A stretch of DNA of 64,000 nucleotides from Lepidodermella squamata (lineage: Eukaryota > Animalia > Gastrotricha). Both the position numbers and the translations under genes were made by a program. Shown one piece after another: positions 3,737-64,000 of this stretch. The first letter of the stretch is position 1, and the number at the start of each line of letters is the position of its first letter. The notes below the pieces were generated by a model. That model did no database searches and was not told where the DNA came from. It was given only the letters and a program-made list of their open reading frames with translations. The stretch lies in assembly GCA_047495785.1 (NCBI GenBank), contig JBLDXI010000021.1, positions 2,604,001 to 2,668,000 of the forward strand. The letters run 5' to 3'.

Positions 3737-6476
<2,740 letters not shown>

Positions 6477-44152: not shown

Positions 44153-45607
44153 TATCTATATTTCCATATATCTTCATCTCACGCCTTGATAAAGTGGGGT
44201 GACCAATTGACCATAATGTGAGACTGTGACGTATGATATCATGGCCGATATTAATAAAAGCTTGTGGCTGCTTGTAGATGCCGTTGGAGTGCAAAATATG
44301 TGCGTAATTTTTGTGTTTTCTTCAATAATTGAGTGCAAGGATTGTTGGCGTATTGTTATGGTGCGTTCACAAACTAACTTCAGAGAGGGTGTCTTGACCG
44401 AACTTGAAACTTCGGAACACTCAAGCGAAACTTCGGTGGCGTTATCAGTGGCAATCAGTGGCAATCAGTGGCAAAGTTTCTATGGGTTAGGGTTAGGTTT
44501 TATGGCGAATGACAGGAGGCGTATGTTGGAAACTAAGTTAAATATTCGTCAAGTTTTACTAAGTTAGGCTAAACCTTAAACCGAGATTCATCTAAAGATC
44601 CCAGTCATTTCGAGACACTTTTCTATTAATTTATAAAATTTGACTAAAAAACGCCGATGAAGTCCCTTTTTGATTGATTTAGAATGTGTCATCTGGAACA
44701 AACTATTTGCGATTTAGGCTCGCAACTTTTCTGCGTAAAAAATATCTCGATGAAAATATCTCTAGATATATAAAAAGTGGTCAGGATTCACTGCACATCT
44801 ATGGGCTTCTTTATAGCTGTTTAACTCATTGACTGCCAAGGCCCCGATGTATCGGTTTTTCCTAGGAGAAACACTAATATCTCCACTAATATTTGAAATG
44901 TTCTGCGGTTCACTGTGTGAACAAAGGGCGCGGTGCGTGCGGGTAACAATGTAAACAGCAATAATAACCACGCATCGCGCGCTACCGCGCTGCAGTCCTG
45001 TGTCACGTGCCGGCTGTTTGCTTTGTTCGATTATTAGAGCGATCGATCAGAGGGGAACGAATAACGAATTCGAATTAATGCGCCTTTTATGATGAGAATG
45101 GTGCCATAAACTTCAACAAATGCCGCGAGTATCATGAAATTCGAGCCAGTGACATATTTGGCTGGTTTTATATGAAATTTAGCTATCACTGTGATATCTC
45201 ACCCTGCGCGCTTTATTTTCACCCTGAATAGCAGGCATGGCTATCGCCCAGTCATCGTGAAATCGCACCAAGGGCCACCCATGCATGACAGACGCGTGAA
45301 GAAATTCGGCTCCAAGGCGCAATTTAGAGCGGCCGATGACGATTTTGTTGTCAAGCTGAGCATCTGCTGCTTGGAGGCATTCCTTCAAGGCAACGAGCCC
45401 CAGCCAATAGGAGCGCGCGCGGAGAAAATACTGGCGGGACGGAAAATGTGCGATTTTCTTTCATTTTGAGTACATTGTATGTCTAGCCTTCAGCAAATTT
45501 CACCTGTCTTCGAAGGTATTCCCGGCGCGAGTTATGTTCAAAGCTAGATTAGCCACGATGTACTCTGCACGCTGCCAAGCGAGTTGCCAAGAAGGTTTTT
45601 GATGTTA

Positions 45608-46028
45608 CCCAGTCCGGCACGAGCACTTTTGGCTCATTCGAACAACTCCGAACAATACGAGTTGACCCCCTTGTTCGCCCGTTTGAATTTTTTTTAGATT
45701 TCATCTGTTCAAGTGAAGATTTCCGATAAAAAATGTCATTGAAATCGCTAAATTGGGATTCTCGCATCACGAAACCCCTAACCCGCCAGGGATTACAGCG
45801 TACCTGGCAGGTACAACTGGAGCCCAAACCTGCCAGGTACGCGTCCCCGGTACTACCCTCCACGTCCCTTGCGTCCCTGGCACTACTTTCAGCGCTGCCG
45901 TTTTTAGCGTTTCCCAGCCGAACAACTCCGAACAAATCCTAAAGTGCTCAAAAAGAGGCGAACAAAGGGGTCAAATCGAATTGTTCGGAGTTGTTCGAAT
46001 GAGCCAAAAGTGCTCGTGCCGGACTGGG
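45608..46028. mobile_element. MITE with ~70-bp TIRs beginning CCCAG
   Basis: CCCAGTCCGGCACGAGCACTTTTGGCTCATTCGAACAACTCCGAACAA mirrored at the right end; TSD unclear. Confidence 0.8.
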
Positions 46029-47139
46029 AAGTGTGGCCTTTGCCAGATTCAAGTTCATCCTTGAAATTATCCGCACCCTAGTAGATATACCCGAAAGCAA
46101 TTTATTCTTACTTATCTGAACTTGGCAATCATCGAGGATTGATATTCGCGCTTCGAAAATTAGAATTTTTCTCTAAAGCTTTCTGATCTACTAGCTCCTA
46201 GAATTTGGATTGCCCCTAATTGATAGTATTTGTTTCTATAGAAGCTGGCAACTCGAGCTACTATAATTTCAACCTTGAAATATGAGCTATTCTTGAACCT
46301 TGACCTTGGATAAATCGTTCACAAAGTCGGGCTTTGGATCAGTATGTATGTGTTTTTTACGTCAATGGCCGCCATTTCAATTACTGAAGTCATACTGAAG
46401 TCGATTAGAGCTTCGAATCAAATTAACGGAATTTCCTCGGCTTAGCTATGCGGTAAAAACGCTCGAAAACAGTCTGAATTCAGGCTCCTGGTTCCTTGTC
46501 AGAATTAACATTTTCGAGAATGGGATGAAATGACTTTATGAAGGCCTTCTTTTGTCAGAAGTCTTCAGAAGTCAGAAATAACTAAGCTTAGGAATGGTCG
46601 ATTAGAATGGGCTTCCTCTATTGGAACAGCTACGGTATTTGGTATTCGCGCATATTTTTCCAATATTTTTTTTAATTCAGGCCACTATTTGAACTAAACC
46701 AGCGTAAAGCTTCTCTACTTCTTATTCGAAACAAAGAAAAAACACAGCCACGGTTGAGATAAAATTGAATATTGTATGGGAATTGTATGGTAAATTCCCA
46801 AGGCTAGGGCTATATTCCTGCACTGTATTCCTCAACAAATGGAATTTCAGGTCTTCAATCGAATCACTGGATTTTTCATTATCACGCCTATCTGAGAGAT
46901 CTCCATATTACAAGGTATTTAGCGCTATAAGCGGTCAGTATATCGATTCCACAAATCAGTGATTTTCCCTTGGGAATATTCCAGATATCATCTGTCTTGA
47001 AACCCAACAAATAATCTTCCACATAAAACCCAAGGTCCAAGGCATCATGTGGCTAAAACATAATACTCCCAGGTTCAGGGTAGGCAGCAATATCAAAAAC
47101 AAAAACCGCTAAATCGCGAGAAATCTGAACAATTCGGAT

Positions 47140-47181
47140 GGGTTAGGGTTAGGGTTAGGGTTAGGGTTAGGGTTAGGGTTA
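47140..47181 (+). repeat. Telomeric tract (GGGTTA)7
   Basis: Directly visible. Confidence 0.98.
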
Positions 47182-49238
47182 TTGGTAATAGTTTAATACA
47201 GACGAGCTGCAAACCGGGGCCTCTCGTTTTACCGAGAGTCAAACCGGGCCCTACCATTACTCCATCATAGGTATCCAAGATGAGCATCATTTTTATGTTT
47301 GTGATAATTCTTCATCACAAAAATTATGTGTTCCTAACCACTCCGCGATAATACTGAGATCCGATAAAAAATTCCCGACAAATGGCTCAAAGGAACTCAG
47401 ACAAAATTTGTATTCAAAGAATGAATACAATTCAATCAGAAGAATGACCCAGGGGAGTCATTTTCTGTTTGATCTTATTTTACCATGACCCAGGGGAGTC
47501 AGGCAAATTATTTATTTTACCATGACCCAGGGGAGTCAGGCAAATTATTAATATTTCACCATGACCCAAGGGAGTCAGGGAAATTACAAAGGATAGAATT
47601 AGAAATAAATAAATTGTAAACATTTCAACATAAGTCTACTGCCTTGGAACAGTTTCATAACTTTGAAAAAATTACTTCAAATTACATCAATATTCGTCAA
47701 ACGTTGAAGCAAAAGTTATGAAGGGTTTTACACTAGTGCCCTCAAACTTACTATATGTTGAAAACAAAGTTTAACAGATAGTGCTGTTGAAGAGCGATTG
47801 ATAATTTTACAGTCTTCGAGAAAGACTTTTATAAGCTTCTTTGATTGAATGGCTGCGTAAATTATTTGTTCGCCAGATTTTGCCAATCGTCGTGCCAAGT
47901 CAAGTCACATGGATCTTATTCATGCGTTGTATTTAATTAGCGAGTCGTTCTTTATGAATGAAATAAAATTCCAAGCTCAAGTCACGTGCAAACTAAAGCA
48001 CATAAAAAATTATTTCCAAGATATTTCGATGATTTTGCGCTAAAGCCGACCAACGAGAAAAAAATTCCTATACAGAGTACTGCGCACAATAAGAAGTACT
48101 ACGCGCGCATAATATTATAAGATATACTTATAGCCCGCATTCTGTGTGAAAAAAATGAATGTACTGGACAAATGACCAACAAATATAAGTGCGCTTTTGT
48201 GGATGTTACCATGAAATCTTCTGCTTACCTGGTAGAGAACTGTCGAAAGTATCAGGAAATCGATAGAAAAGCATGTGCAACCGTGGGTTATTCACCGCTA
48301 GGCGACTTGAAAATGATCTGAAATCGCAAAAACCTTGGAAAAATGCACCCACTGGTGTCTTGAGCGGCGTTTCTGCGAAAACCAAAATGGGTTCACCCAC
48401 AGTTTTTCACATTCCCTAGCCGAGCACATGGATAGCTTATTAGGGAAGTAAGAAATAGCCAGTTAATATGGAGGACATCCACGGCTTTTCAGTATTTTCC
48501 CTCCCGGCTTGAAAATCGTGGAAAAATCGAAAATTGTATGTTTTTAGTCGCTCTTATCTCGAAAACACCCATGGTTGCACCATAGCTTTTTGTGGTCAAA
48601 TAGGAGAAGGCACTAGGAGGAAGGTTTTAACAGGGAAAACAGCAAGAACCACCCCAACTTATCCAAGACTTTTTCGTCCTGATTAGCACTCACTACGTCA
48701 CACCCAACACCTCGAAAATGCATGGCCTGGCGTCTTTTGGGGCATTGCTGCAAGAAAGAGCATGGGTTCAACCACAGTTTTTCACGTCCTTTAGTAGAGC
48801 ACAAGAAGATCTTACTCAGGAAGTAAGAAATTGCCAGTAAATGCGGTGTTTATCCACGGGTTAAGAGTCTTTTCTCTCCACATCCGATTCAAGTCCGAAT
48901 CGAAGAGAAAGTGAGGATTTTTCATCTTTCATGGCACTTATCTTGAAAAAACCCGTGGCTGCACCATAAGTTTTTGTATTCAAACAGTAGAGGAGATTGA
49001 GAAGAAGGTTTCAAAAGAGAAAACAGCACGAACCACGACAACTTATCCACGACTTTTTCGCCTTGATGGACAATCACATTTTAAGCTCAAAATCGAACTT
49101 CAAAACTGGGCTATTCACCTTACCTTACGCGGCAGAGCCCTTATTTCACCTGTAACAAGTTGAATGAAGCGCATACTTCTTATAAAATAGCAAATATGCG
49201 GGTGCTACCATGATTTGCCATGATTTTCCATTCGGTCC
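47182..49238 (-). mobile_element. Non-coding telomere-attached module A (diverged relative of the 54-57 kb partner element)
   Basis: First ~95 nt are homologous to 54067-54160; bounded by telomeric tracts; contains 4x ATGACCCA(G/A)GGGAGTCA (47444-47577) and a ~375-bp diverged direct repeat (48440-49070). Confidence 0.6.
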
Positions 49239-49302
49239 GGGTTAGGGTTAGGGTTAGGGTTAGGGTTAGGGTTAGGGTTAGGGTTAGGGTTAGTAGGGTT
49301 AG
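49239..49302 (+). repeat. Telomeric tract (GGGTTA)9 plus variant GTAGGGTTAG
   Basis: Directly visible. Confidence 0.97.
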
Positions 49303-50251
49303 TACTATGGTCCTCCGGTTCAATGTATTGCAAATTTTCAAGCAAAACTTTCCACCCCGTGACCAAGTTGTCACGGAGGTTCGTGCTGGTCATTGAGGCG
49401 CAGGCTTGACGCCACGCGTTGACGAATTCTTCACGCGGTTCGCCGAGGTTGATGCCGCGGGCCTTGCGGATGACCGTAACCGAGCTGCCTTGACTGCAGA
49501 CGCTGTTGAAGGCGCGAGCGGTGTAGAGCGGTAGCGAGTCGGGGTCGCAGTAGAGGAACGCTTGCGACGCGTCGTCGTAGGCTAAGTGGGCGGCACCTGC
49601 GTGAGCCCAGCCGGAGCGGAGGCGAAGCGAGGTGACGGTGGCGGCGGCGAAACTGTCGCGTTCTGCAACGACTTTCGGGTCGACGAGCGAGTCTGTGGGA
49701 AAGAATTTGTTCATGCCATTAATAAAATTTCTTTCATGTGGCGTATAGCCGCCGCTGTTAACAGCAGTGCTAATGCGCGCCCGAATAATAAAATGATTAA
49801 TAAATGATGCAAGCTTGGCCTGATATCGCTCGAGGATATCGTGACGGTGCTGTTGCTCGAGCCGTTGACGACGGTTAGAGGGCGGTGGTGGCGGCGGTGA
49901 CGCGTTCCTTGGAGCACGATTGCTCGGAGCGGGCGGACGCTGCTCTCGCCATGAGCGGTCGCGATAGCGGTCTTCTCGGTCTTGAGGACGGTCTTCGCGG
50001 TAGTAATGGCGGTCGTCGCGGTAGCGCTGACGGTCTTCGTCACGGTGACGGTGTTGTTGTCGATGTTGATCGTCTTGTTCGCGGTAACGCGATTGAGACG
50101 GCGGCGGTGGTTGACGATGGCGACCGGCGGTTGATGTCGAATTGTGGTAGACATAACGGAAGCCGCCAATGTAAGCGCGCTTCGCCGGATCGTTGTTGGC
50201 CGTGGTGAACCCGTTGTAATTATTTGCAACAAAGCGATTGTGATTTGACAT
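49293..50251 (-). CDS. PLE-1 ORF1, N-terminal part (runs into telomeric repeats)
   Basis: MSNHNRFVANNYNGFT...FRYVYHNS is homologous to the N-terminus of the 831-aa ORF1 at 61134-63629. Confidence 0.8.
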
Positions 50252-50273
50252 TTATCAAGATTTATTTATACTT

Positions 50274-50307
50274 TCAACTAACGCGTTTCAAATTTCATCA
50301 GAGTTGA
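50274..50307 (-). ncRNA. Minimal type I hammerhead ribozyme
   Basis: Minus strand: TCAACT CTGATGA AATTT GAAAC GC GTT^AGTTGA; stem I TCAACT/AGTTGA. Confidence 0.8.
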
Positions 50308-51276
50308 GTGTGAAAACAGATAGATTCGTCGTCGTATTTAACCTAGCGAAGCTGCGCCCACTCGGTCCAGGTGAGATCGTGTTAGGCGCAGCCGCTTAAC
50401 GCAACAGCTGTACATTAATTAACAATAATCTGTGTGTAACGAGGCGTTGACTAGGCGTGGCGCGGCAGAAGGCGAAAACAGGTGTGCGCCGAGGTGCTGT
50501 AATCCCTAATCCCTCGCAGGTGCTCGGGTGATCACGAGCGGATTAACAGAAGGGAGCGAGAGCGGATAATCATTAAGCAGTGATTAAGTCCTGATGACTA
50601 CCGGCGTTGAGAGCTACTCGGAAGGAGGTTTGGCGGACGTAACAAATCGACCGCGAAGAAAAAATCCGGCGTGACAACGGGGCGCAAAAGTAGGCAATTT
50701 ATCAAAAACTTGCAGAAGTGACACAATTGCAGCCGAGGTGTGTTTCTAGATGTAAGAGACCACGGAGAGCTCAAAAATCGAGGTCCCAGACTCACACGAG
50801 CTGGCGTTTGGAAGTAAACATCAAAATACAAAAATATTTTCGGTTTTTTCCGGATTTCGTGAAAACTAAGTCGAAAATCAAAATTCGAAGATCGGAGCAA
50901 AAAACTACATCATATGACACATCCAAATATGCTAGTCATTAAAACGTGGTCATACTTTCATATTAGTGAGCTCGCAGTTTTTGCCGTTTTACGCGAAAAC
51001 GGTGAGGATTGGCGATCAAACAACAGTAACGTGACCCATATGTCTAGAACAGACCACGCGGAATCGATTGGAACTATTTCCCGGGAGAGTAGGTGTCACG
51101 GTTAACGAGATAATCGACTTTTACGAAAATAAATTTTGGTGAAGTGAGCGGAAGAGCGCGTAAGAGCGCACATAAGTAATTTCAGTGACTATTCACACGT
51201 TTCGCAACATTAGAACATTATTACAGATTAATTGAGCGAGAGAATTTTGAGGCGAAAAACTTTGAGCCAGAGCACG

Positions 51277-53082
51277 CTAACAGTCTTTAGTGCGGCAGAG
51301 CTGCTTGACCAGCGACGGGCCGAGGCGTGTGACGACGCGATGCCGGTGCCGTTTGGCGACGTCGAGTAGTGGCTGCAGACCGCGAACGAACTTGGTTTCG
51401 TGCTCCGGCCGCCAGTCACGATCGACCGGTCGCGAGTCAGCACGGTGTCGTAGAAACGGCCAGTCGAGGCCGGCGCAGCCGTCGACAACGCTGCGGCAGA
51501 TTGCGAAGACGTCCGCGTCGTGATAGCCGTACTTGCTGGCGGAGGCGGCGAGACTGAACACGGCCGAGGCCAGGTCCTGTGTGTTGTTACAAATTCGAAC
51601 AAAATTAAGTAAACGACCAGAAATAGCTGCACGTAAGGTGGAAAGAGGGTGATTAGAATCTGCGTGCAATAAAGGCAGCGCATTCATAGGCTTAAAGTAA
51701 ACCCCTGTTCGAATTGAACCGTCTTCAAACTTCTGCATTCGCACGTCGAGCACGTTAGCGCAGTCGTTGCTGATGTCGATTTCCAGTTTGATGCGAGGGT
51801 GCAGCGCGCTGTAGCCATTGCCCAGGTTGACGGCGGCTTCGTGGCTGGTAGCGACCGCGAAAATGTCGTCTCGGTAGCGTTTGAACAGTAGGAGGCCCTC
51901 GGAGCGGGCGACGAGGTCGCGTTCGAGAACGAAGAGAAAGGCGTCGGCGACGACGGGCGCGGTGTTCGACCCCATCGGGATGCCGTGCACTTGCCGATAA
52001 CGAGCGCCTGCAAATAGAAAAATATTGAATTTAAGCGTGATTTTTAATATTTCGACAACAAGATGGCGTTCTGCCTGAGACCCGATACTGTTCTCGCGCA
52101 GTAGTAGTTCGATAGCGGCGATGCCTTCGTCGATCGGGACGTTGGTGTAGAGATCGCTGACGTCGGCGGTGAAGAACGTAGCGTCGAGACCGCTTGTGTC
52201 GATTGACCGCACGGCTGAAAGCAGGTCGATTGTAGACATCGCACACGTCGTCATGAAGTAATTCAGCGGTTTACAGAAGGCGGCGGCGACCTTGTCTGCG
52301 GCTGCGAGCGCGGTACCTAGACAGTCGACGATCGGGCGAATCTTCGGTAGACCATCGACGTCGTTCGGTTTATGCATTTTCGGCAAGAAGTAGATGTACC
52401 GGTCACGCGTTGGCACGAGGTCGAGACCGCGGAGCAGCTTGCGTTGCGCCGCGGTACCTGAGGCGTTGATTCGCTCGACCAGAGTCTTCATTGCTTCCAG
52501 CCCGGCGGTTGACTCGTCTTCAGTGGCGTTGACGTAGTTGGCGGTTGACAGATGCTTCGTTGCCATTCGGTTGTAGTCTTCTTTCTTGAGATAGACCATG
52601 GCCGAGCCCTTATCCGACTTCTTAAAGACGCCGTTGTTGCGGAGCGCCTTGATTCGTCGCAGCTGCGGGTCGTCGTTGAGCGGGCCGATTGTGAGCGTTC
52701 GGGCAGGCTGAGCGTGACGGATGACAACTTGGCCGTTGATGCCTACGATAGGCCCTACGAAGCGTTTCGAGAACGGTACCGCTGGGACCGAGACGTCGTA
52801 GCGGTGATCGGCTCGCGGTTGAACGGTTGCACCTAGAAGATCTGACATAGATTTTAGTGAGGCAAATTTTTCTTTTTTAGTAAAATTTATAATTTTAAGG
52901 CCCCGCTCGAGTGCCTGTTTCTCGGCGGGCGCCAAACTCCCTGTCAGATCAATGACTGACGGCAGGGAACAGCGGTGAAGGCTGAAGGCGGTACCATTCT
53001 GGACAAGGCACGACATGCCCGTCAGCCCTAGCGACTTTAAAAAACGAGATCGCGGCTTTTCGATGCCTCCCTGCCTTGTCAC
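51277..53082 (-). CDS. PLE-1 reverse transcriptase, no GIY-YIG endonuclease
   Basis: YFLPKMHK..PKIRPIV, FFTADVSDLYTNVP, YRQVHGIPMGS, FKRYRDDIF, GVYFKP; stops at LVKQLCRTKDC. Confidence 0.93.
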   Translation of the reverse strand: MTRQGGIEKPRSRFLKSLGLTGMSCLVQNGTAFSLHRCSLPSVIDLTGSLAPAEKQALERGLKIINFTKKEKFASLKSMSDLLGATVQPRADHRYDVSVPAVPFSKRFVGPIVGINGQVVIRHAQPARTLTIGPLNDDPQLRRIKALRNNGVFKKSDKGSAMVYLKKEDYNRMATKHLSTANYVNATEDESTAGLEAMKTLVERINASGTAAQRKLLRGLDLVPTRDRYIYFLPKMHKPNDVDGLPKIRPIVDCLGTALAAADKVAAAFCKPLNYFMTTCAMSTIDLLSAVRSIDTSGLDATFFTADVSDLYTNVPIDEGIAAIELLLRENSIGSQAERHLVVEILKITLKFNIFLFAGARYRQVHGIPMGSNTAPVVADAFLFVLERDLVARSEGLLLFKRYRDDIFAVATSHEAAVNLGNGYSALHPRIKLEIDISNDCANVLDVRMQKFEDGSIRTGVYFKPMNALPLLHADSNHPLSTLRAAISGRLLNFVRICNNTQDLASAVFSLAASASKYGYHDADVFAICRSVVDGCAGLDWPFLRHRADSRPVDRDWRPEHETKFVRGLQPLLDVAKRHRHRVVTRLGPSLVKQLCRTKDC

Positions 53083-53976
53083 CGTGAACTGTGGCGATGT
53101 GTTCGCATAGGGCGTTGATCGAACCGCGGTGAGGTTTGTGAAGACACTTGCTGCCGTCCACCATCTTCTTGCCGCAGTACCAGAAGTGTTCTAATTCGTT
53201 CCATTCGACGCCGATTTCCGGGTCTTCTTTCTTCGTCTTCTGCCACCATTCGCGCCGGTACTTGGCCGTGTTGACTCCGCGTTGCTGAGCGAACGTTTTC
53301 GGCGAGACTTGTTGCGCGTTGGTGTTCGAACGTTTCGACTGACCGGGCGCGTTGTTGTAAACTTTCGATGCGGACGCGGCGTTTTCACCGTACATCTTCT
53401 TCGCGGGTACAGCCTTGGGCTTCGCTTTCGGAGCGACGGTCGAGATCGCTTGTTGTTTCGCGGTGGGCGGACGAGCTGTAGGCGATGGCTCCTTCTCTTC
53501 TTCTTGACGCTTCCGCTTCGACGACACTGAAGGCGGAGGCGCGACCGGGTGGGTCACGCGTTGAGAGTTCGGCGTGAGCCCGAAGAAATCCGACGCGACC
53601 ATGATAACATTTTCTCTAGGAAAAAGTGGGTTATTATTAATTAAAGCTTCGGCCGCTGTAGCGGCAGCCAGAAGCGCTGTGTCGCTCGCAGTATCGATGA
53701 CAGGTGACGAGATCTTCCTCGGTGCGGCGGGCTGAACCGATTGTTCAGAGGCGCGTGTTGTGGTCGGAGTGACCGAATCGGTGTTGTTGTTGTTCGATTC
53801 GACGACGACGACGGGTGAGGCGTTACGTGCGCTGGCCACGACTGGCGGTGAGGCGGTAGGCGTCCGCGTTGTCGGAGACTTGGCGACTGGCGCGGCGATA
53901 GGTTCGCTGTTCTTGTTGACGATGGGTGAGGCGACGGCGGCGGCTGCTGGAGGCGCGACCTTCGATGTGACGTCGA
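52949..53976 (-). CDS. PLE-1 ORF1, C-terminal part with C2H2/BED-like zinc finger (5' truncated by telomeric tract)
   Basis: WYCGKKMVDGSKCLHKPHRGSINALCEHIATVH; homologous to the PLE-2 ORF1 C-terminus. Confidence 0.8.
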
Positions 53977-54066
53977 GGGTTAGGGTTAGGGTTAGGGTTA
54001 GGGTTAGGGTTAGGGTTAGGGTTAGGGTTAGGGTTAGGGTTGGGGTTAGGGTTAGGGTTAGGGTTA
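53977..54066 (+). repeat. Telomeric tract, 15 units (one TTGGGG variant)
   Basis: Directly visible. Confidence 0.98.
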
Positions 54067-54249
54067 TTGTAATGATTTAATACAGACGAGCTGTAAACCG
54101 GGGATTCTCCGAAGAGAATGACACCGGGCCCTACCACTACTCCCTCGGGAGCCGATCCAGAGAACGTGGTCTCAGTGATCAGAACAAACAATGGAACGAT
54201 CGGAAACCGCGCGAGATTAATCCGATAATATTCAATATCAGGACCACGA
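54067..54249 (-). mobile_element. Short truncated copy of non-autonomous partner element B (3' end only)
   Basis: Identical to 54328-54510; capped by a telomeric tract. Confidence 0.85.
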
Positions 54250-54327
54250 GGGTTAGGGTTAGGGTTAGGGTTAGGGTTAGGGTTAGGGTTAGGGTTAGGG
54301 TTAGGGTTAGGGTTGGGGTTAGGGTTA
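54250..54327 (+). repeat. Telomeric tract, 13 units (one TTGGGG variant)
   Basis: Directly visible. Confidence 0.98.
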
Positions 54328-54684
54328 TTGTAATGATTTAATACAGACGAGCTGTAAACCGGGGATTCTCCGAAGAGAATGACACCGGGCCCTACCACTA
54401 CTCCCTCGGGAGCCGATCCAGAGAACGTGGTCTCAGTGATCAGAACAAACAATGGAACGATCGGAAACCGCGCGAGATTAATCCGATAATATTCAATATC
54501 AGGACCACGAGGGGTTCGCCGATATAATTAGATAGTCACGGGGGACTGCTGTATAAACTCGCAAACATTAATTAAACAAGTTCATTACCGAAACTCCAAA
54601 GAACGTTGTCGTTTGTAACTGCTTAAACCAGTTAAACCAGCAATTGTAACTGCATAAACCATGAATGAAATGGAACCGTAAACT

Positions 54685-54753
54685 AAGAGGTAGCCTTTAT
54701 CAGACCGGTTTCGCTACTTGGCTAGGGTAGCTCATCAGTGACTTTTACCTCTT
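54685..54753 (-). ncRNA. Type I hammerhead ribozyme
   Basis: Minus strand: AAGAGGTA AAA GTCA CTGATGA GCTAC-CCTAGCCAA-GTAGC GAAAC CG GTC^TGAT AAAGGC TACCTCTT; stem II and extended stem I pair. Confidence 0.9.
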
Positions 54754-55040
54754 GCAAAAGAATGATTTTATTCTGCTAGCTTGAGCATTTAAATAGGCAG
54801 CAGGCCACGTTTATCCAAGCAAGGTCAGGCGCCACATGCTTGATTTTTCGTGTGTGTAAGATCACGTGAATGCGTGATTTCATGCGTGAAAAACTTTATT
54901 TTATTATCGTGCAGCATTTTAATTTCCCCATAATATAATTTATTAGTGACTTGTTGAAAATGTCGAATGTATTTATTATCGTAATCATTTTATCTCATAT
55001 AAACAGTTCCATGTCATAAATTTAAAATCAGACGGTCATC

Positions 55041-57237
55041 GAGCAACATGTGATGAAATTTGAAACCTCAAAAAATTAATTTTAAACTTAGAAATAGGTC
55101 ATTTGGCATCGCTCTGGAACCTTTTCGGTCAACGTAACTGGCAACGTGACTTGATATTCACGATCAGCGGTCCTTGTAGTACTAATTCCGTGAAATATTC
55201 ATGACTTGGTTCAGGATTGAGCTACTTGTGATGAAATTTGAGACCTCAAAAAATTAATTTTAAACTTCGAAATAGGTCATTTGGCATCGCTCTGGAACCT
55301 TTTCGGTCAACGCAACTGGCAAAGTGACTTGATATTCACGATCAGCGGTCCTTGTAATACTAATTTCGTGAAATATTCATGACTTGGTTCAGGATTGAGC
55401 AACTTGTGATGAAATTTGAAACCTCAAAAAATTAATTTTAAACTTCGAAATAGGTCATTTGGCATCGCTCTGGAACCTTTTCGGTCAACGCAACTGGCAA
55501 AGTGACTTGATATTCACGATCAGCGGTCCTTGTAGTACTAATTCCGTGAGATATTCATGACTTGGTTCAGGATTGAGCAACTTGTGATGAGATTTGAGAC
55601 CTCAAAAAATTAATTTTAAACTTCGAAATAGGTCATTTGGCATCGCTCTGGAACCTTTTCGGTCAACGCAACTGGCAAAGTGACTTGATATTCACGATCA
55701 GCGGTCCTTGTAGTACTAATTCCGTGAAATATTCATGACTTGGTTCAGGATTGAGCAACTTGTGATGAAATTTGAAACCTCAAAAAATTAATTTTAAACT
55801 TCGAAATAGGTCATTTGGCATCGCTCTGGAACCTTTTCGGTCAACGCAACTGGCAAAGTGACTTGATATTCACGATCAGCGGTCCTTGTAGTACTAATTC
55901 CGTGAGATATTCATGACTTGGTTCAGGATTGAGCAACTTGTGATGAGATTTGAGACCTCAAAAAATTAATTTTAAACTTCGAAATAGGTCATTTGGCATC
56001 GCTCTGGAACCTTTTCGGTCAACGCAACTGGCAAAGTGACTTGATATTCACGATCAGCGGTCCTTGTAGTACTAATTCCGTGAAATATTCATGACTTGGT
56101 TCAGGATTGAGCAACTTGTGATGAAATTTGAAACCTCAAAAAATTAATTTTAAACTTAGAAATAGGTCATTTGGCATCGCTCTGGAACCTTTTCGGTCAA
56201 CGCAACTGGCAAAGTGACTTGATATTCACGATCAGCGGTCCTTGTAGTACTAATTCCGTGAAATATTCATGACTTGGTTCAGGATTGAGCAACTTGTGAT
56301 GAAATTTGAGACCTCAAAAAATTAATTTTAAACTTCGAAATAGGTCATTTGGCATCGCTCTGGAACCTTTTCGGTCAACGCAACTGGCAAAGTGACTTGA
56401 TATTCACGATCAGCGGTCCTTGTAGTACTAATTCCGTGAAATATTCATGACTTGGTTCAGGATTGAGCAACTTGTGATGAAATTTGAAACCTCAAAAAAT
56501 TAATTTTAAACTTCGAAATAGGTCATTTGGCATCGCTCTGGAACCTTTTCGGTCAACGCAACTGGCAAAGTGACTTGATATTCACGATCAGCGGTCCTTG
56601 TAGTACTAATTCCGTGAGATATTCATGACTTGGTTCAGGATTGAGCAACTTGTGATGAGATTTGAGACCTCAAAAAATTAATTTTAAACTTCGAAATAGG
56701 TCATTTGGCATCGCTCTGGAACCTTTTCGGTCAACGCAACTGGCAAAGTGACTTGATATTCACGATCAGCGGTCCTTGTAGTACTAATTCCGTGAAATAT
56801 TCATGACTTGGTTCAGGATTGAGCAACTTGTGATGAAATTTGAAACCTCAAAAAATTAATTTTAAACTTAGAAATAGGTCATTTGGCATCGCTCTGGAAC
56901 CTTTTCGGTCAACGCAACTGGCAAAGTGACTTGATATTCACGATCAGCGGTCCTTGTAGTACTAATTCCGTGAAATATTCATGACTTGGTTCAGGATTGA
57001 GCAACTTGTGATGAAATTTGAGACCTCAAAAAATTAATTTTAAACTTCGAAATAGGTCATTTGGCATCGCTCTGGAACCTTTTCGGTCAACGCAACTGGC
57101 AAAGTGACTTGATATTCACGATCAGCGGTCCTTGTAGTACTAATTCCGTGAAATATTCATGACTTGGTTCAGGATTGAGCAACTTGTGATGAAATTTGAA
57201 ACCTCAAAAAATTAATTTGCAACTTCGAAATAGGTCT
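55041..57237. repeat. 178-bp tandem satellite, ~12.3 copies
   Basis: GAGCAAC/GAGCTAC starts at 55041, 55219, 55397 ... 57177 (period 178). Confidence 0.97.
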
Positions 57238-57551
57238 TTTGGTTTCGCTCAAGAGCACCTCGTTCCCCTTCACAGCCCCTTTGGTTTCTTGGTGATACAT
57301 TGTACCGAACGGGCAAGATCAGTTAGGGTTATTGTAATGATTTAATACAGACGAGCTGTAAACCGGGGATTCTCCGAAGAGAATGACACCGGGCCCTACC
57401 ACTACTCCCTCGGGAGCCGATCCAGAGAACGTGGTCTCAGTGATCAGAACAAACAATGGAACGATCGGAAACCGCGCGAGATTAATCCGATAATATTCAA
57501 TATCAGGACCACGAGGGGTTCGCCGATATAATTAGATAGTCACGGGGGACT

Positions 57552-57713
57552 GGGTTAGGGTTAGGGTTAGGGTTAGGGTTAGGGTTAGGGTTAGGGTTAG
57601 GGTTAGGGTTAGGGTTAGGGTTAGGGTTAGGGTTAGGGTTAGGGTTAGGGTTAGGGTTAGGGTTAGGGTTAGGGTTAGGGTTAGGGTTAGGGTTAGGGTT
57701 AGGGTTAGGGTTA
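57552..57713 (+). repeat. Telomeric tract (GGGTTA)27
   Basis: Directly visible. Confidence 0.98.
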
Positions 57714-58684
57714 ATTAGTAAGCTGCGGTCCGCCTGTATTTTGTTTTGCGCAAGGTGATAAGTAAAAGCCTGCCAGCCCTTCGTAACGTTGGTGAGCAAG
57801 TCAGGGCTGCGCATGGCGCGTTTCATTTCGTTGCAGGCGCATTGAAATTGTTCGTAGATCGCCGGCCAGTAGATGTTGCTCGACTTGCGCAGGACTCGTA
57901 GCACGCTGTTGCTGCTCGCGACAGTGTTGAAGACCCGCGACGTTTGGGCCGCTCTGTCCGACGGATGGCAGTAGTTTGCTGCTTGGCGTGCATCGGTGAA
58001 CGCACTTTCGAGAGCTTGCTCGTGTCCTGTCATGGATTTATGACGTATCTCGGAAACAACATTGTAAAAAAGCAAATCAACGATGCCCTGAGTGCTAGCT
58101 TCGAACCGATGCTCGCGCGGGAAAAACTTCTCGAGCACTGGCCGGAGTGCCTTCTCGTGAGCGGTGGTGGGTCTCTCGTTTTGAGGTTTGGCGTAGTCTT
58201 CACTGAAGTTGGCTGTGGCGAGCTTGGCTAAAATGAAGAAATGATGAATAAAATTGTTGAGTTTCTCGCGGAAGCGATCGAGGAGATCTTGTCGATGTTC
58301 CCTCGCTCGACGTTGCCCTTCTGCTGCTGCCTTAGAAGGTAGCTGCCTGTTGTCCGTTGAGTCTTGCGGTCGCTTCGTACCATCCGCGTGCCGACGGTCT
58401 GACTGAGCGTTCGAACCAGACCCGTGCGAGCGACTGGAGCGGCCGTGCGTAGCACCCTCGTGCGAACGGTAAGATCGAGTGTTCGAACTGGACGCTGCTG
58501 CGGAGACTGTCTGTTTCGAGCGGCTTTGATGACGATCGCGCCGTTCTTGTTGATAGGGCGGATTGTGACGACTCGAGTTGTAATAGACGTAGCGGAAGCG
58601 GCCAAAGATGGCCCGTCCCGGGCGGTCGTTGTTAATTTCTGTAAACCCGTTGTTATTAGAAACAAAACGGTTACGGTTAGACAT
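57714..58684 (-). CDS. PLE-2 ORF1 5' portion in the terminal repeat (pLTR), fused to telomeric repeats
   Basis: Near-identical to the first ~325 aa of 61134-63629, then poly(NP). Confidence 0.85.
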
Positions 58685-58693
58685 AATGAGATT

Positions 58694-58732
58694 TATTGGT
58701 AGACCGGTTTCACTATTTCTTCAGTACCAATA
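58694..58732 (-). ncRNA. Minimal type I hammerhead ribozyme
   Basis: Minus strand: TATTGGTA CTGAAGA AATAGT GAAAC CG GTC^TACCAATA; perfect 8-bp stem I. Confidence 0.88.
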
Positions 58733-59461
58733 TCATACTTCTGATAGAATTATAACGAGTGACATTATTGTGACAGCGCTATGATAACACCGTACCAGGT
58801 GCGTGTGCCTCGGACTATGTTAGGCGCAGCGGATTAGGATTACAAGGTGTTGTTTCGCGCACACGTGTTACTAAGTTCAAGTTAACTACGGCAGGTGTGC
58901 GTCTAGGTGTGCGCACTATATCGGATTAGCGCACAGATGTTGTGGCCACTACTTGTTAATCGGTGATTCTAGCCAAATGGGTAACAAGGTGTGCTACTAG
59001 GCTGGCGAGGCCTTGATGACGAGCTAACGTGACATCTGTGCTGTTGAGAGACGACAATTACAATGATGAAGATGACCAATAGAAGATTGACAGCTGACGC
59101 AAGGCGTTATTGCCGGCGACATCAAGGTATTGAAAGCAATAAAAGTCATAAAACAGGATATGCCGATTCTAAGGTCGTTATCGACTTTGGATCTCGCTGC
59201 GGGTTACTGGTTGATACCAGGATGGCTTGGCCGCCGTGGTCGTGCGCGACTATGACTCGCTGACGTCCAGAACATTAGACCTCGCTGCGGGTTACTGGCC
59301 GATACCGCGTTGAACAGGCTATAAAACATGAATGGAGAAACATATAATACTGCGTAATGGTGGTAATTAATCTAATGAATTAATTAAGAATAATTAATAA
59401 ACGGTCGGTAGCTTTGTTGCTACTCTTGACATCGTCGCTGGCTACTGGTCGATTGGTTCGG

Positions 59462-61288
59462 CTAGCAGTCTTTCGTTCGGCAGAGTTGCTTGACAACGCT
59501 TGGACCGAGTCGGGTGACGAGACGAATGCGTCGCCGGCGTGCGATGTCGTACAGTGGCTGTAGTGGCCGAACGAACTTCGTTTCGACCGGTGGTCGCCAG
59601 TCTTGTTGGTAGCGAAAGTTGTCGACACGATTGCGTAGGAACGGCCAGTCTTGACCTTCGCAACTTGTGATGACGTCGTGGGCGAGCGCAAAAACATCTG
59701 CGTCGACGTAGCCGTACTTGGACGCGGAACTGGCGAGGCTAAAAATGGCAGAACACAAGTCTTCTGTATTATTGCAAATTCTTAAAAAGTTTAAAATGCG
59801 CCCTGTGACTGCGGCCCGGAGAGTCGATTCTGGGTGATTGGAGTCAGCGTGTAAGAGAGGCAACGAGTTCATGGGCTTGAAGTAAACGCCGGTTCTGATG
59901 GAGCCATCGGGGTACTTGCTCAGGCGGACGTCGAGAACATTCGCACGCTCGGAGCTGATCTCGACTTCGAGCTTTATACGTGGATGTAGTGCGCCGTATT
60001 CGTTGCCTAGCGTGACTGCGGCCTCTTGAGTGGTGCAGATTGCGAAGACGTCGTCTCGATACCGTTTGAACAACATCACGTCGGTTTGGCGTTCGACCAG
60101 ATCGCGCTCGAGCACATAGAGGAACGCGTCCGCTACGACTGGGGCACTGTTGGAGCCCATCGGAATTCCGTGCACCTGACGATACTGAATGCCTGAAAAA
60201 TAGAAAATGTTTGAATTAAGTGTTATTTCGAGCATTGCGACGACGAGGTCGCGTTCGGGTGCGGTTCCGATTGCGTTCTCGTCCAACATGGTCTTGATCG
60301 CTGCGATTCCTTCTCCAATCGGTACGTTGGTGTACAAGTCGCTCACGTCTGCGGTAAAGAACGTGACGTCGCACCCGCTTGAGTCGATTGCGCGAACAGC
60401 GTGTAGTAGGTCGATGGTAGACGAGGCACAGGTAGTCATGAACCGGTTAAGCGGTTTGCAGTAAGCTGCGGCGACCTTGTCTGCGGCGGCGAGCGCTGTG
60501 CCCAAACAGTCGACAATCGGCCGAATTTTCGGTAGACCATCTACGTCAAATGCCTTGTGCATTTTTGGTAAAAAATAAATATGACGATCGCGGGTTGGCT
60601 CGAGATCGAGCCCGCGTAACAGCTTGCGTTGTGCGGCTGTACCGGTTGCCATAACGCGGTCGACGAGAGTCTTCATTGCTTCGAGGCCTCGCTTCTCTTC
60701 TGATTCTTCGGCGTGCACATAGTTCGCTGTAGTGAGATGTTTGAGCGCCATTTTCGAGTAGTTCGCCTTTGACATGTAGACCATCGCTGCACCTTTGTCA
60801 GATTTCTTGAATACGCCGTCTTTGCGGAGGGCGCGTAATCGTCGTAGCTGTGGGTCGTCGACGATGGGACCGAGCCGTACTGTGCGAGCTGGCTGTGCGT
60901 GGCGGATAACGACTTGTCCGTGGATCCCGATAATCGGACCAACGAAGCGCTTTGAGAACGCTACAGAGGGAACCTTGACGTCGAGGCCGTGGTCGGGACG
61001 AGGGACGACGGTTGCGCCAAGGAGATCTGAAATGACATTAACACAGGCAATTTTATCTTTTTTCGTGAAATTAATGATTTTAAGGCCACGCTCGAGTGCC
61101 TGTTTCTCGGCTGGCTGGAGAGTTCCCGTCAGGTCAACGACGGACGGTAGAGAACAGCGATGCAGCGTCCCGTACGCTCCGTTTTGGACTAGGGATGGGA
61201 TGGCCCTGAGCCCGAGCGATCCCGCGAAACCGCGACGCGATGTCTGCGTGTCTGTCTCCTTTTTCGTGCTTCTCGCGGATGTGTGTGA
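59462..61288 (-). CDS. PLE-2 reverse transcriptase (open frame 61288-59462; no start codon until 60784), no endonuclease
   Basis: HIYFLPKMHK, FFTADVSDLYTNVP, YRQVHGIPMGS, FKRYRDDVF; the upstream ATG-less part (LVQNG...LHRCSLPSVVDLTG) is homologous to PLE-1 RT. Confidence 0.93.
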   Translation of the reverse strand, partial: SHTSARSTKKETDTQTSRRGFAGSLGLRAIPSLVQNGAYGTLHRCSLPSVVDLTGTLQPAEKQALERGLKIINFTKKDKIACVNVISDLLGATVVPRPDHGLDVKVPSVAFSKRFVGPIIGIHGQVVIRHAQPARTVRLGPIVDDPQLRRLRALRKDGVFKKSDKGAAMVYMSKANYSKMALKHLTTANYVHAEESEEKRGLEAMKTLVDRVMATGTAAQRKLLRGLDLEPTRDRHIYFLPKMHKAFDVDGLPKIRPIVDCLGTALAAADKVAAAYCKPLNRFMTTCASSTIDLLHAVRAIDSSGCDVTFFTADVSDLYTNVPIGEGIAAIKTMLDENAIGTAPERDLVVAMLEITLNSNIFYFSGIQYRQVHGIPMGSNSAPVVADAFLYVLERDLVERQTDVMLFKRYRDDVFAICTTQEAAVTLGNEYGALHPRIKLEVEISSERANVLDVRLSKYPDGSIRTGVYFKPMNSLPLLHADSNHPESTLRAAVTGRILNFLRICNNTEDLCSAIFSLASSASKYGYVDADVFALAHDVITSCEGQDWPFLRNRVDNFRYQQDWRPPVETKFVRPLQPLYDIARRRRIRLVTRLGPSVVKQLCRTKDC

Positions 61289-63629
61289 TCAGACCATTGA
61301 TTGAGCAGCTCTTGCCGACGTGGCCGCATCGTTTGCCGCTCGGTAGCTTGAAAGCGCACGACCACTTGCCGTTGTGAAACTCGACGAGTATCGACGGATC
61401 GCGTATCTTTTCTTTCTTCCACCATTCGCGGGTGAACTCTGCTTTGCTCAAGTTCTTCTGTATGGCGTAGTCTTGCTTTGATAGCGTGGTCGTCGTATCA
61501 CCCTGCTCTTGACGGACCGACTGAGCGTTCGAACCGTGCATCGGTGGGTTGTGCGCAGGCGGTCGCGATGCCGGTGCCAGGCGTTTGAGACACGTTCCGG
61601 GTTGCCCGTACATTTGTTGCGCCGAGATCGCTTTGACGACGGCGGGCTTCTTGGACGGCGCCGGAAGTTCTGTTGGTGACTTGTCTTTCGGGCTGGTGGC
61701 ACGAGCTCGCTTGGTGGGCACCGAGGCGTTTGGCGCACCTGGTCGAGGAGCGTTCTGCGAGACCGCGTTGATCGCTTCACCGAAGAACGAGGCGACCGAG
61801 CTGACATCTGAAATAGAATTGCAATTATTAAAACGAGATTCGACATTGGCTGCAGCTGCTGCTAGCGCGGTGTCGCTGGCACTGTCGATCGGTGAAGCGT
61901 CCTTGCTCGGAGTCTGAGGCAGAGGCGCGGACGTGGGCGTTAACTGGGCTGCTGTCGATTTGTCGGCAGTGACCGTTTGTGGAGTAGCCGGGCGGGCTAC
62001 ATTGATAGTCGTTGAGTGGTCGGCGGTCGCCGCTGAATCGCGGCTGCCACCGTTCTTGGTAACCAAGTTGCTAGCTTCAGAAGTTGACCGAGCGGTAGTC
62101 GACGCTGAACCGCGACTGTCAACGCTCTTTGAGACCAAGTTGCTAGCTTCAGAAGTTGACCGAGCGGTAGTCGACGCTGAACCGCGACTGTCATCGCTCT
62201 TTGAGACCGAGTTGCTAGCTTCAGAAGTTGACCGAGCGGTAGTCGACGCTGAACCGCGACTGTCATCGCTCTTTGAGACCAAGTTGCTAGCTTCAGAAGT
62301 TGACCGTGCGGGAATCGAGGCCAAATCGCGACCGAGACCTCTCTTCGGTACCAGTGCGTTGATCTGAGCGGTTGAACGTGCGGAAATCCAGGTCGAATCG
62401 CGTTCTTCTGTGGTGAGCAAGCCCCAATCACCCGGGCTCGGATGGCCAGTCTGAGCGGTTGAACCGGGAGCCGCCTTGGGTGTCGGTGGTAACGCTTGAC
62501 GAGCTGTTTCTGATTGACCTGTCGGCGTAACCGGATTGACGGCCGGGTCGCTTACGACCATCGGCGACGAAGACTGAATGGTGTCGTGCGCTTCAACTGT
62601 TATGTTGACAGGTGCTTCCCTTGGGGAGGCATGGACCTGAGAAAGAGAGTTAGGGTTAATTAGTAAGCTGCGGTCCGCCTGTATTTTGTTTTGCGCAAGG
62701 TGATAAGTAAAAGCCTGCCAGCCCTTCGTAACGTTGGTGAGCAAGTCAGGGCTGCGCATGGCGCGTTTCATTTCGTTGCAGGCGCATTGAAATTGTTCGT
62801 AGATCGCCGGCCAGTAGATGTTGCTCGACTTGCGCAGGACTCGTAGCACGCTGTTGCTGCTCGCGACAGTGTTGAAGACCCGCGACGTTTGGGCCGCTCT
62901 GTCCGACGGATGGCAGTAGTTTGCTGCTTGGCGTGCATCGGTGAACGCACTTTCGAGAGCTTGCTCGTGTCCTGTCATGGATTTATGACGTATCTCGGAA
63001 ACAACATTGTAAAAAAGCAAATCAACGATGCCCTGAGTGCTAGCTTCGAACCGATGCTCGCGCGGGAAGAACTTCTCGAGCACTGGCCGGAGTGCCTTCT
63101 CGTGAGCGGTGGTGGGTCTCTCGTTTTGAGGTTTGGCGTAGTCTTCACTGAAGTTGGCTGTGGCGAGCTTGGCTAAAATGAAGAAATGATGAATAAAATT
63201 GTTGAGTTTCTCGCGGAAGCGATCGAGGAGATCTTGTCGATGTTCCCTCGCTCGACGTTGCCCTTCTGCTGCTGCCTTAGAAGGTAGCTGCCCGTTGTCC
63301 GTTGAGTCTTGCGGTCGCTTCGTACCATCCGCGTGCCGACGGTCTGACTGAGCGTTCGAACCAGACCCGTGCGAGCGACTGGAGCGGCCGTGCGTAGCAC
63401 CCTCGTGCGAACGGTAAGATCGAGTGTTCGAACTGGACGCTGCTGCGGAGACTGTCTGTTTCGAGCGGCTTTGATGACGATCGCGCCGTTCTTGTTGATA
63501 GGGCGGATTGTGACGACTCGAGTTGTAATAGACGTAGCGGAAGCGGCCAAAGATGGCCCGTCCCGGGCGGTCGTTGTTAATTTCTGTAAACCCGTTGTTA
63601 TTAGAAACAAAACGGTTACGGTTAGACAT
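61134..63629 (-). CDS. PLE-2 ORF1 (831 aa): basic N-terminus, helical domain, S/T-rich repeats, C-terminal C2H2/BED-like finger
   Basis: Full ORF with ATG; WSCAFKLPSGKRCGHVGKSCSINGLITHIREKH. Confidence 0.88.
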   Translation of the reverse strand: MSNRNRFVSNNNGFTEINNDRPGRAIFGRFRYVYYNSSRHNPPYQQERRDRHQSRSKQTVSAAASSSNTRSYRSHEGATHGRSSRSHGSGSNAQSDRRHADGTKRPQDSTDNGQLPSKAAAEGQRRAREHRQDLLDRFREKLNNFIHHFFILAKLATANFSEDYAKPQNERPTTAHEKALRPVLEKFFPREHRFEASTQGIVDLLFYNVVSEIRHKSMTGHEQALESAFTDARQAANYCHPSDRAAQTSRVFNTVASSNSVLRVLRKSSNIYWPAIYEQFQCACNEMKRAMRSPDLLTNVTKGWQAFTYHLAQNKIQADRSLLINPNSLSQVHASPREAPVNITVEAHDTIQSSSPMVVSDPAVNPVTPTGQSETARQALPPTPKAAPGSTAQTGHPSPGDWGLLTTEERDSTWISARSTAQINALVPKRGLGRDLASIPARSTSEASNLVSKSDDSRGSASTTARSTSEASNSVSKSDDSRGSASTTARSTSEASNLVSKSVDSRGSASTTARSTSEASNLVTKNGGSRDSAATADHSTTINVARPATPQTVTADKSTAAQLTPTSAPLPQTPSKDASPIDSASDTALAAAAANVESRFNNCNSISDVSSVASFFGEAINAVSQNAPRPGAPNASVPTKRARATSPKDKSPTELPAPSKKPAVVKAISAQQMYGQPGTCLKRLAPASRPPAHNPPMHGSNAQSVRQEQGDTTTTLSKQDYAIQKNLSKAEFTREWWKKEKIRDPSILVEFHNGKWSCAFKLPSGKRCGHVGKSCSINGLITHIREKHEKGDRHADIASRFRGIARAQGHPIPSPKRSVRDAASLFSTVRR
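62040..62310 (-). repeat. 72-bp in-frame tandem repeat (~4 copies) in ORF1
   Basis: (C)A/GAGTTGCTAGCTTCAGAAGTTGACCG at 62064, 62136, 62208, 62280; encodes STSEASNLVSKSDDSRGSASTTAR. Confidence 0.92.
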
Positions 63630-63638
63630 AATGAGATT

Positions 63639-63677
63639 TATTGGTAGACCGGTTTCACTATTTCTTCAGTACCAATA
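63639..63677 (-). ncRNA. Minimal type I hammerhead ribozyme (copy of 58694-58732)
   Basis: Same sequence at offset 4945. Confidence 0.88.
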
Positions 63678-64000
63678 TCATACTTCTGATAGAATTATAA
63701 CGAGTGACATTATTGTGACAGCGCTATGATAACACCGTACCAGGTGCGTGTGCCTCGGACTATGTTAGGCGCAGCGGATTAGGATTACAAGGTGTTGTTT
63801 CGCGCACACGTGTTACTAAGTTCAAGTTAACTACGGCAGGTGTGCGTCTAGGTGTGCGCACTATATCGGATTAGCGCACAGATGTTGTGGCCACTACTTG
63901 TTGATCGGTGATTCTAGCCAAATGGGTAACAAGGTGTGCTACTAGGCTGGCGAGGCCTTGATGACGAGCTAACGTGACATCTGTGCTGTTGAGAGACGAC

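Follow-up and report, generated by a model that had tools for sequence, protein, structure and literature searches.

Penelope-like elements (PLEs) that lack an endonuclease are the closest living relatives of telomerase, and the way in which they engage chromosome ends is, to our knowledge, known from sequence anatomy only. Attachment through short telomere-complementary stretches has already been described for Athena, Coprina and the Terminons (PMC8557442, PMC6431247). In bdelloid rotifers, Athena and the Terminons encode a reverse transcriptase (RT) without an endonuclease and have two ORFs; they form head-to-tail, co-oriented arrays at chromosome ends, in which short telomere tracts separate 5'-truncated copies, and they carry both a reverse-complement telomere stretch for attachment and a hammerhead motif (PMC8557442, PMC6431247). 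These features recur at the locus described here, in particular in its main element, A. The principle of attachment is known; the position of the attachment site, inside a coding sequence, is a variant of it.

The window, i.e., the whole 64-kb stretch of DNA that was analysed, holds a subtelomeric stack of terminal additions in its right 20 kb (44.4-64 kb; Table 1). Six (GGGTTA)n tracts are present, every one on the + strand, and no telomere match of 10 nt or more was found in the 64-kb window on the opposite strand. The G-rich strand of a telomere runs 5' to 3' towards the chromosome end, which must therefore lie to the right. Between the tracts, all elements are in sense orientation on the - strand, with their ORFs pointing towards the centromere and their 3' side abutting the tract to the left, so that chromosome-end location, co-orientation and telomere tracts between copies are all found together. 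The tracts themselves are plain (GGGTTA)n, as expected from telomerase. A tract with a TTGGGG variant forms part of a 261-nt segment that occurs twice, having been duplicated at either the DNA or the RNA level.

Table 1. Features of the terminal stack and of element A, by position in the window
Feature	Position	Strand	Description
Telomere tract	44484-44497	+	
Piece X, unclassified	44498-47139		
Telomere tract	47140-47181	+	
Element B2	47182-49238	-	
Telomere tract	49239-49293	+	
PLE-1	49294-53975	-	Second coding family
Telomere tract	53976-54066	+	Caps PLE-1
Partial B copy	54067-54248	-	182 nt; begins after the tract at B's usual joining nucleotide
Telomere tract	54249-54327	+	
Element B	54328-57551	-	Non-coding
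Telomere tract	57552-57713	+	(GGGTTA)27, joined to element A
Element A	57714 to beyond 64000	-	
Second, partial A copy	57714-59055	-	5'UTR, hammerhead, ORF1 codons 1-326
Second hammerhead copy of A	58707-58724	-	
ORF2 of A	59462-61261	-	~600 aa Penelope-like reverse transcriptase; +1 frame, overlaps ORF1
ORF1 of A	61134-63629	-	831 aa, intact
Telomere-complementary motif TAACCCTAAC	62649-62658	-	In ORF1 of A, codons N-P-N
Minimal hammerhead core of A	63652-63669	-	~17 nt before ORF1 ATG; CTGAAGA...GAAAC

Element A, whose unit measures 4945 nt, is an endonuclease-less PLE. Its ORF2 is 73% identical to that of PLE-1 and scores at or just under the Pfam cut-off for RVT_1, while PF28514 and PF26215 are found on ORF2 homologues. 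A K..DKG motif is invariant among 13 aligned ORF2 proteins, as expected from the N-terminal DKG of PLEs. No Pfam match to a GIY-YIG endonuclease domain was obtained, ORF2 stops after the thumb region, and no further ORF lies between ORF2 and the next unit. ORF1 matches no Pfam family, a word search for its relatives returned none, and its exact sequence is unrecorded in the databases searched. As to the clade within the endonuclease-deficient PLEs, the presence of two ORFs and the mostly rotiferan make-up of the Atlas clusters nearest to the RT give a lead, and a lead only, towards Athena. The hammerhead of A has a palindromic ACCGGT loop, typical of the minimal hammerheads of metazoan PLEs (PMC4209133). 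Searches against Rfam reported no ribozyme in the stack at the gathering score; at a permissive threshold, a weak hammerhead match was obtained upstream of ORF1 only and nothing at the 10-mer motif described below. The second copy of A makes positions 57701-59055 a repeat of 62646-64000 (99.7% identical, offset 4945), with three differences between the copies beyond the motif.

The original prediction held that a telomere-complementary motif inside ORF1 both serves as codons and marks the exact point at which the element is attached to a telomere tract, and the letters bear this out. The + strand at 62645-62665 reads AGAGTTAGGGTTAATTAGTAA, and on the - strand ATT AAC CCT AAC TCT encodes I-N-P-N-S, codons 323-327 of the intact ORF1. 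The (GGGTTA)27 tract is followed by ATTAGTAAGC, the very letters that follow 62658, and the partial copy of A thus starts precisely at the motif nucleotide. Joining at such a motif had also been noted for two other elements of the stack, and is found in both. B carries the motif (AGTTAGGGTTA) at its internal junction, 57321-57331, and the two copies of B that are joined to a tract both start at the corresponding nucleotide (54067 and 54328). The tract junction of PLE-1 is GGGTTAGTAGGGTTAG (49288-49303), at a position of ORF1 homologous to that of A: its residue 307 is aligned with residue 311 of A, the N-terminal parts of the two proteins being 31% identical (E 1e-37). B2 likewise joins its tract, (GGGTTA)7, at B's equivalent nucleotide, 47182. 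A short reverse-complement telomere stretch is therefore found at the attachment point of A, B, B2 and PLE-1, and the junctions of the window map to it in A, in PLE-1, twice in B and in B2. The read evidence comes from a single public run containing the element, in the form of Logan contigs from which rare variants are dropped and which may be the window's own source. In this read set, the only loose end or branch on the A unit is GTTAGGGTTAGGGTTAGG, i.e., telomere repeats, before 62649, and the main contig begins exactly at 62649; another contig crosses the internal joint, and one short contig consists of telomere plus R.

By chance, 64 kb should contain about 0.4 isolated 10-nt matches in telomere phase on each strand. 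The significance of the motif lies not in its bare presence, but in its exact coincidence with a repeat boundary in four element families and in its occurrence in ten relatives. Among all elements its length is 10-13 nt, or 1.7-2.2 repeats. Healing by telomerase of a break in ORF1 was considered as a source of the tract-to-element junction and is excluded by polarity, the tract being on the centromere side. Since the tract sits centromere-side of the joined copy, something was added onto a telomere.

Relatives of the RT were recovered on eleven short contigs from other samples. Ten of these contigs, with an RT identity of 35-62%, cover the motif spot, the eleventh (L010) starting inside ORF1, downstream of the expected position. 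All ten have, on the sense strand within ORF1 and in the N-P-N frame, a telomere complement of 10-13 nt. Within the coding family, the motif is located 765-993 nt after a minimal hammerhead found just upstream of ORF1. Elsewhere on these contigs, only L001 and L011 have a further 10-nt run in telomere phase on the sense strand, a single one in either case, and none was found on the antisense strand. The motif is doubled in L002, L004, L011, L012 and PLE-1; the L012 contig, from the run of another species, ends in the motif, and L002, L005 and L006 were assembled as circles, which fits tandem or longer-than-unit copies. A metagenome scan with an ORF2 profile yielded one distant, irrelevant locus (L009).

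Conservation of the motif is visible at the level of nucleotides. Its 8-nt core is invariant in nine of nine aligned elements and the next two bases are nearly so, with flanks at background, whereas ORF2 of the same nine elements, which is much better conserved than ORF1, has 10% invariant columns and a longest invariant run of 5 nt. The codon just before the motif specifies I, V, C, S, F, P, T or N, yet its third base is always T, and Pro is written CCT, which is rare among the Pro codons of these elements (4-43%). Judged against the codon usage of the element concerned, NNT-AAC-CCT-AAC would be chosen with a probability of 0.004-0.04; as the relatives share descent, these per-element values overstate independence, and no combined figure is given. 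The invariant core as compared with the 5-nt run in ORF2, the rare synonymous codons and the fixed T of the preceding codon all indicate that selection acts on the nucleotides of the motif, and not on the N-P-N protein sequence. An alignment fold of the coding family revealed no conserved structure 5' of the motif or beside it.

The non-coding element B (3004-nt unit) contains a 178-bp satellite and a single hammerhead at 54708-54738, about 375 nt upstream of the motif; B2 is about 85% identical to B across the first 124 nt. With A and PLE-1, B and B2 have in common only the motif and the type of hammerhead. They are thus non-coding, with a type I PLE-like hammerhead and with cis signals as the only sequences shared with an autonomous element, as in retrozyme-like partners. 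An 85-nt domain adjoining the motif is common to B and B2. It was ruled out as a hammerhead by its wrong core positions and wrong strand, and its fold is no stabler than that of shuffled sequence (z -0.6); one hairpin in it has compensatory changes.

Counted from the fixed start, the copies in this window have lengths of 0.06, about 1.0, 1.07 and at least 1.27 units, and only copies that exceed one unit contain a complete ORF1. A fixed start combined with varied stops is the pattern of internal priming on a template longer than one unit. The copy of about one unit is PLE-1, whose left end joins its tract at the motif and whose right end is no more than about two codons away from the homologous motif spot. 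Its ORF1 frame is open right up to the tract, at 53975, and the D-V-T-S-K-V-A-P-P with which ORF1 begins there lines up with what comes after N-P-N in A and L003. This right end is either that of a true motif-to-motif unit or an eroding end that was recapped on reaching the motif. The DNA form of the motif ends in TTAGGGTTA, which would be an ideal seed for telomerase, and the 182-nt B copy also ends at a GGGTT match.

The best explanation for these observations, to which we assign a probability of roughly 55%, is that an endonuclease-less PLE uses the 10-mer as its primer-binding site, and does so internally. Within the element RNA, UAACCCUAAC would pair, at a chromosome end, with the TTAGGG 3' overhang, which the element RT would extend along the RNA; each new copy would start at the motif nucleotide because the RT extends an overhang paired there. 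That the motif is the annealing site of the G-overhang is an interpretation with good support. RNA-templated extension of this overhang is consistent with the intact, conserved RT of both coding families, with the motif being the exact complement of the overhang, and with the retention by B and B2 of the motif and the hammerhead type only. Such a mechanism has been put forward before for Athena, Coprina and the Terminons (PMC8557442, PMC3846280, PMC6431247). Priming would be internal since the site is in ORF1, approximately 1 kb downstream of the hammerhead and of the ORF1 start; because this length of ORF1 coding sequence separates hammerhead and motif, and no conserved structure adjoins the latter, the site should be internal to any RNA that encodes ORF1. 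The 5' part of the element would be copied first and the 3' part of that unit next, for which the RT would either be on a circular or longer-than-unit RNA or have switched to a second RNA. Candidate templates are a read-through multimer, a circle cut by the hammerhead and ligated, or two RNAs connected by a template jump. Circularly permuted copies of variable length would be the outcome, and telomerase would then recap the 5' end of the element. As the telomeric hexamer corresponds to two codons (N-P), the site and changes in its repeat number keep the frame, which may explain why a priming site resides in a gene.

A different use of the same site is possible, although we consider it rather doubtful: the motif could be the 3' terminus of the template RNA, as in Athena and the Terminons, each unit beginning just past one motif and extending to the following one. 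The internal motif would then be a joint, formed where the RT has completed one RNA and moves on to the 3' end of a second, and ORF1 would happen to span this joint. PLE-1, one unit long with the motif at both sides, is explained by such motif-bounded units, with RNA ends at the motif, no less well than by internal priming. A partial upstream copy followed by a full unit, in the sense direction, is also the canonical PLE arrangement, or pseudo-LTR (PMC8557442), and motif length and doubling vary among the relatives, as imprecise joints would. However, nothing was seen that would make an RNA end at the motif: the hammerhead is 765-993 nt upstream of it (375 nt in B), Rfam detects no other ribozyme, no conserved structure was found next to the motif in the coding family, and the ORF1 messenger must in any case pass through it. 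An RNA may not even be needed if the overhang of one chromosome end invades the 10-nt motif on another and break-induced replication proceeds outward, erosion in the other direction stopping at the motif because it seeds telomerase. This DNA-only process, which we regard as improbable, would yield the same tract-R-U-motif-R structure, and the right end of PLE-1 and the GGGTT end of the 182-nt B copy do resemble telomerase seeding; the duplicated 261-nt segment with its TTGGGG-containing tract could have arisen in this manner too, although it could equally have been copied as RNA. But both coding families keep intact, conserved RT genes, a motif conserved from species to species suggests that the element gains from it, the non-coding partners retain just two signals, motif and hammerhead, both acting at the RNA level, and the copies end at varied points, where they are recapped, without running into the flanks of a donor.

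The original prediction went further and suggested reiterative synthesis of telomere repeats by the element RT, the motif being a true telomerase-like template on which the RT would realign, copy repeatedly and make the TTAGGG tracts itself. The dual role of the motif, as codons and as exact attachment point, stands, and selection on its nucleotides is as expected of a site that pairs with the overhang; the reiterative part is not supported. In length and sequence the motif does match the template of telomerase RNA (1.5-2 repeats, 11 nt in human; PMC4993307), and PLE RTs are the sister group of TERT (PMC8557442). Every recovered copy nevertheless reads through past the 5' edge of the motif, the alignment fold of the coding family contains no template-boundary structure, the variant repeat of PLE-1, GTAGGGTTA, is not carried into its tract, and the tracts, being plain (GGGTTA)n, are indistinguishable from telomerase products, all of which makes repeat addition by the element very unlikely. 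A chance match, or a need for Asn-Pro-Asn in the protein, is harder still to credit. A single 10-nt match is not rare in 64 kb (0.4 expected), and the frame is identical across the relatives; against this, the wobble positions are invariant, Pro is encoded by the rare CCT, the third base of the preceding codon is fixed although the amino acid varies, and B and B2, which are non-coding, carry the motif as well.

With internal priming at the 10-mer as the preferred reading, the locus can be set against the systems that it most resembles. In Terminons, the telomere stretch is directly downstream of a 3'-terminal hammerhead fold (PMC6431247), whereas here it is 765-993 nt downstream, in ORF1, as N-P-N; a hammerhead directly upstream of a 3'-end telomere stretch is thus not what we find, ORF1 codons intervening in the coding family. 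The attachment signal, then, need not adjoin the hammerhead. The telomere repeat is of the TTAGGG type, as opposed to (ACACCC)n or (TCACCC)n for Athena and the Terminons. The literature searched, which excluded the primary Athena and Terminon papers, yielded no report of an in-gene site far from the hammerhead, of its strict conservation or of its sharing with non-coding elements. TTAGGG-type telomeres and ORFs directed towards the centromere are features of Coprina, from fungi and other eukaryotes (e.g., Coprina-1_Alen), as are telomere repeats on both sides and direct terminal repeats (PMC13159263). Unlike A, Coprina elements typically have one ORF, and PMC13159263 reports no in-gene attachment site for them. 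B and B2, for their part, are akin to the non-LTR retrozymes, which are non-coding PLE partners with a PLE-type hammerhead and tandem repeats (bioRxiv 10.64898/2026.07.22.740005), but they differ in being telomere-attached via the same 10-mer as A, and the B copy here has a single hammerhead.

In its working principle, and in that only, the proposed priming is reminiscent of the primer-binding site and strong-stop transfer of LTR retroelements: an internal, near-5' site is primed by a cellular 3' end, and the 5' part is copied before the 3' part, giving terminal repeats. The primer, however, would be a chromosome end instead of a tRNA, and the product would be joined directly to the chromosome. 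The putative engaging site of this locus is a fixed 10-mer of telomerase-template size that has long stayed invariant in a gene of rapid evolution and that unrelated non-coding passengers carry as well; it is a sharply defined cis element, mutable even synonymously, and would explain both the circularly permuted copies and the restriction of whole ORF1 to copies longer than one unit.

The template of telomerase RNA is the last point of comparison. Like the motif, it comprises 1.5-2 repeats of telomere complement; it pairs with the G-overhang, as the motif would, and is copied by an RT of the sister clade (PMC4993307), and the 10-13 nt measured in all elements fall within its range of lengths (PMC4993307). 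Its boundary has no counterpart here, all copies showing read-through and no pairs being conserved 5' of the motif in the coding family. In contrast to a telomerase template, the motif is part of a messenger RNA encoding the partner protein of the RT, and the RT would read on into the element. The step by which an RT whose RNA bears a telomere complement might turn into a telomerase is thereby directly testable in a TTAGGG organism, and if a telomerase-type template did work, with the RT adding TTAGGG, which we consider very unlikely, the element would be a living intermediate between a telomere-attaching retrotransposon and telomerase.

One of the telomere tracts lies within a tandem duplication of a 261-nt segment, whose two copies are 99% alike and each comprise the tract together with the first 182 nt of B, a non-coding element joined to tracts at the motif (the 10-nt telomere complement). 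Three repeats before its right end, the tract contains the variant GGGTTG, and a GGGTT microhomology is found at the breakpoint of the duplication. The tract was thus duplicated within a larger unit, at the DNA or RNA level, and not made twice by telomerase.

The PLE-1 copy, from one of the two endonuclease-less Penelope-like coding families, is almost exactly one unit long and has a telomere tract on either side, each adjoining it at the position of the motif; the N- and C-terminal parts of its ORF1 would be in frame only with a joint of 3n+1 letters. Three contigs of related elements from other samples (L002, L005, and L006) were assembled as circles because their ends are identical, over 30, 99, and 55 nt, respectively, which is consistent with other hosts having copies that are tandem or longer than one unit.

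Features of the window, in order of position
Feature	Position	Size or score	Remark
Isolated telomere-like run TTAGGGTTAGGGTT	2122-2135	14 nt	Orientation as tracts
SNORD36 match	4769-4842	40.5 bits	C/D-box snoRNA
Innermost telomere remnant	44444-44497 region	2.3 repeats	
B2 domain	47172-47263		
PLE-1 copy	49294-53975		
PLE-1 ORF1/ORF2 overlap	52949-53082		
Tandem duplication	53988-54513	261-nt segment	
B domain	54318-54404		
178-bp satellite in B	55041-57250	12.4 copies, 97% identical	Bulk of element B
Open frame through tract and partial A copy	57503-58684	393 aa	
A ORF1/ORF2 overlap	61134-61261		
Tandem repeat in A ORF1	62026-62332	72 bp, 4.3 copies	

B and the related B2 share an 85-nt domain directly adjoining the motif, in which one hairpin is preserved by compensatory changes (ATTCTC/GAGAAT versus CTCTCG/CGAGAG); the predicted fold energy of this domain is no better than that of shuffled sequence. 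It was also considered as a hammerhead, which it is not. The right ends of B2 and of X, an unclassified 2.6-kb piece, have ATTCGG in common just before their tracts. Three exact copies of ATCAGTGGCA stand before the innermost telomere remnant, and X comes after it. The isolated telomere-like run lies 42 kb inside the stack of terminal additions. The SNORD36 match exceeds the Rfam gathering score.

The ORF1 frame of the partial copy of A, the other coding family, continues across the entire telomere tract as (Asn-Pro)27, giving an open frame of 393 aa. The tandem repeat of A ORF1 encodes a repeated 24-residue Ser/Thr-rich peptide, and read-set contigs are broken at this repeat. In both A and PLE-1, the end of ORF1 is overlapped over about 130 nt by ORF2, which lies in the +1 (or -2) frame relative to ORF1; Athena has been reported to have a frameshift between ORF1 and ORF2, together with a pseudoknot (PMC8557442).
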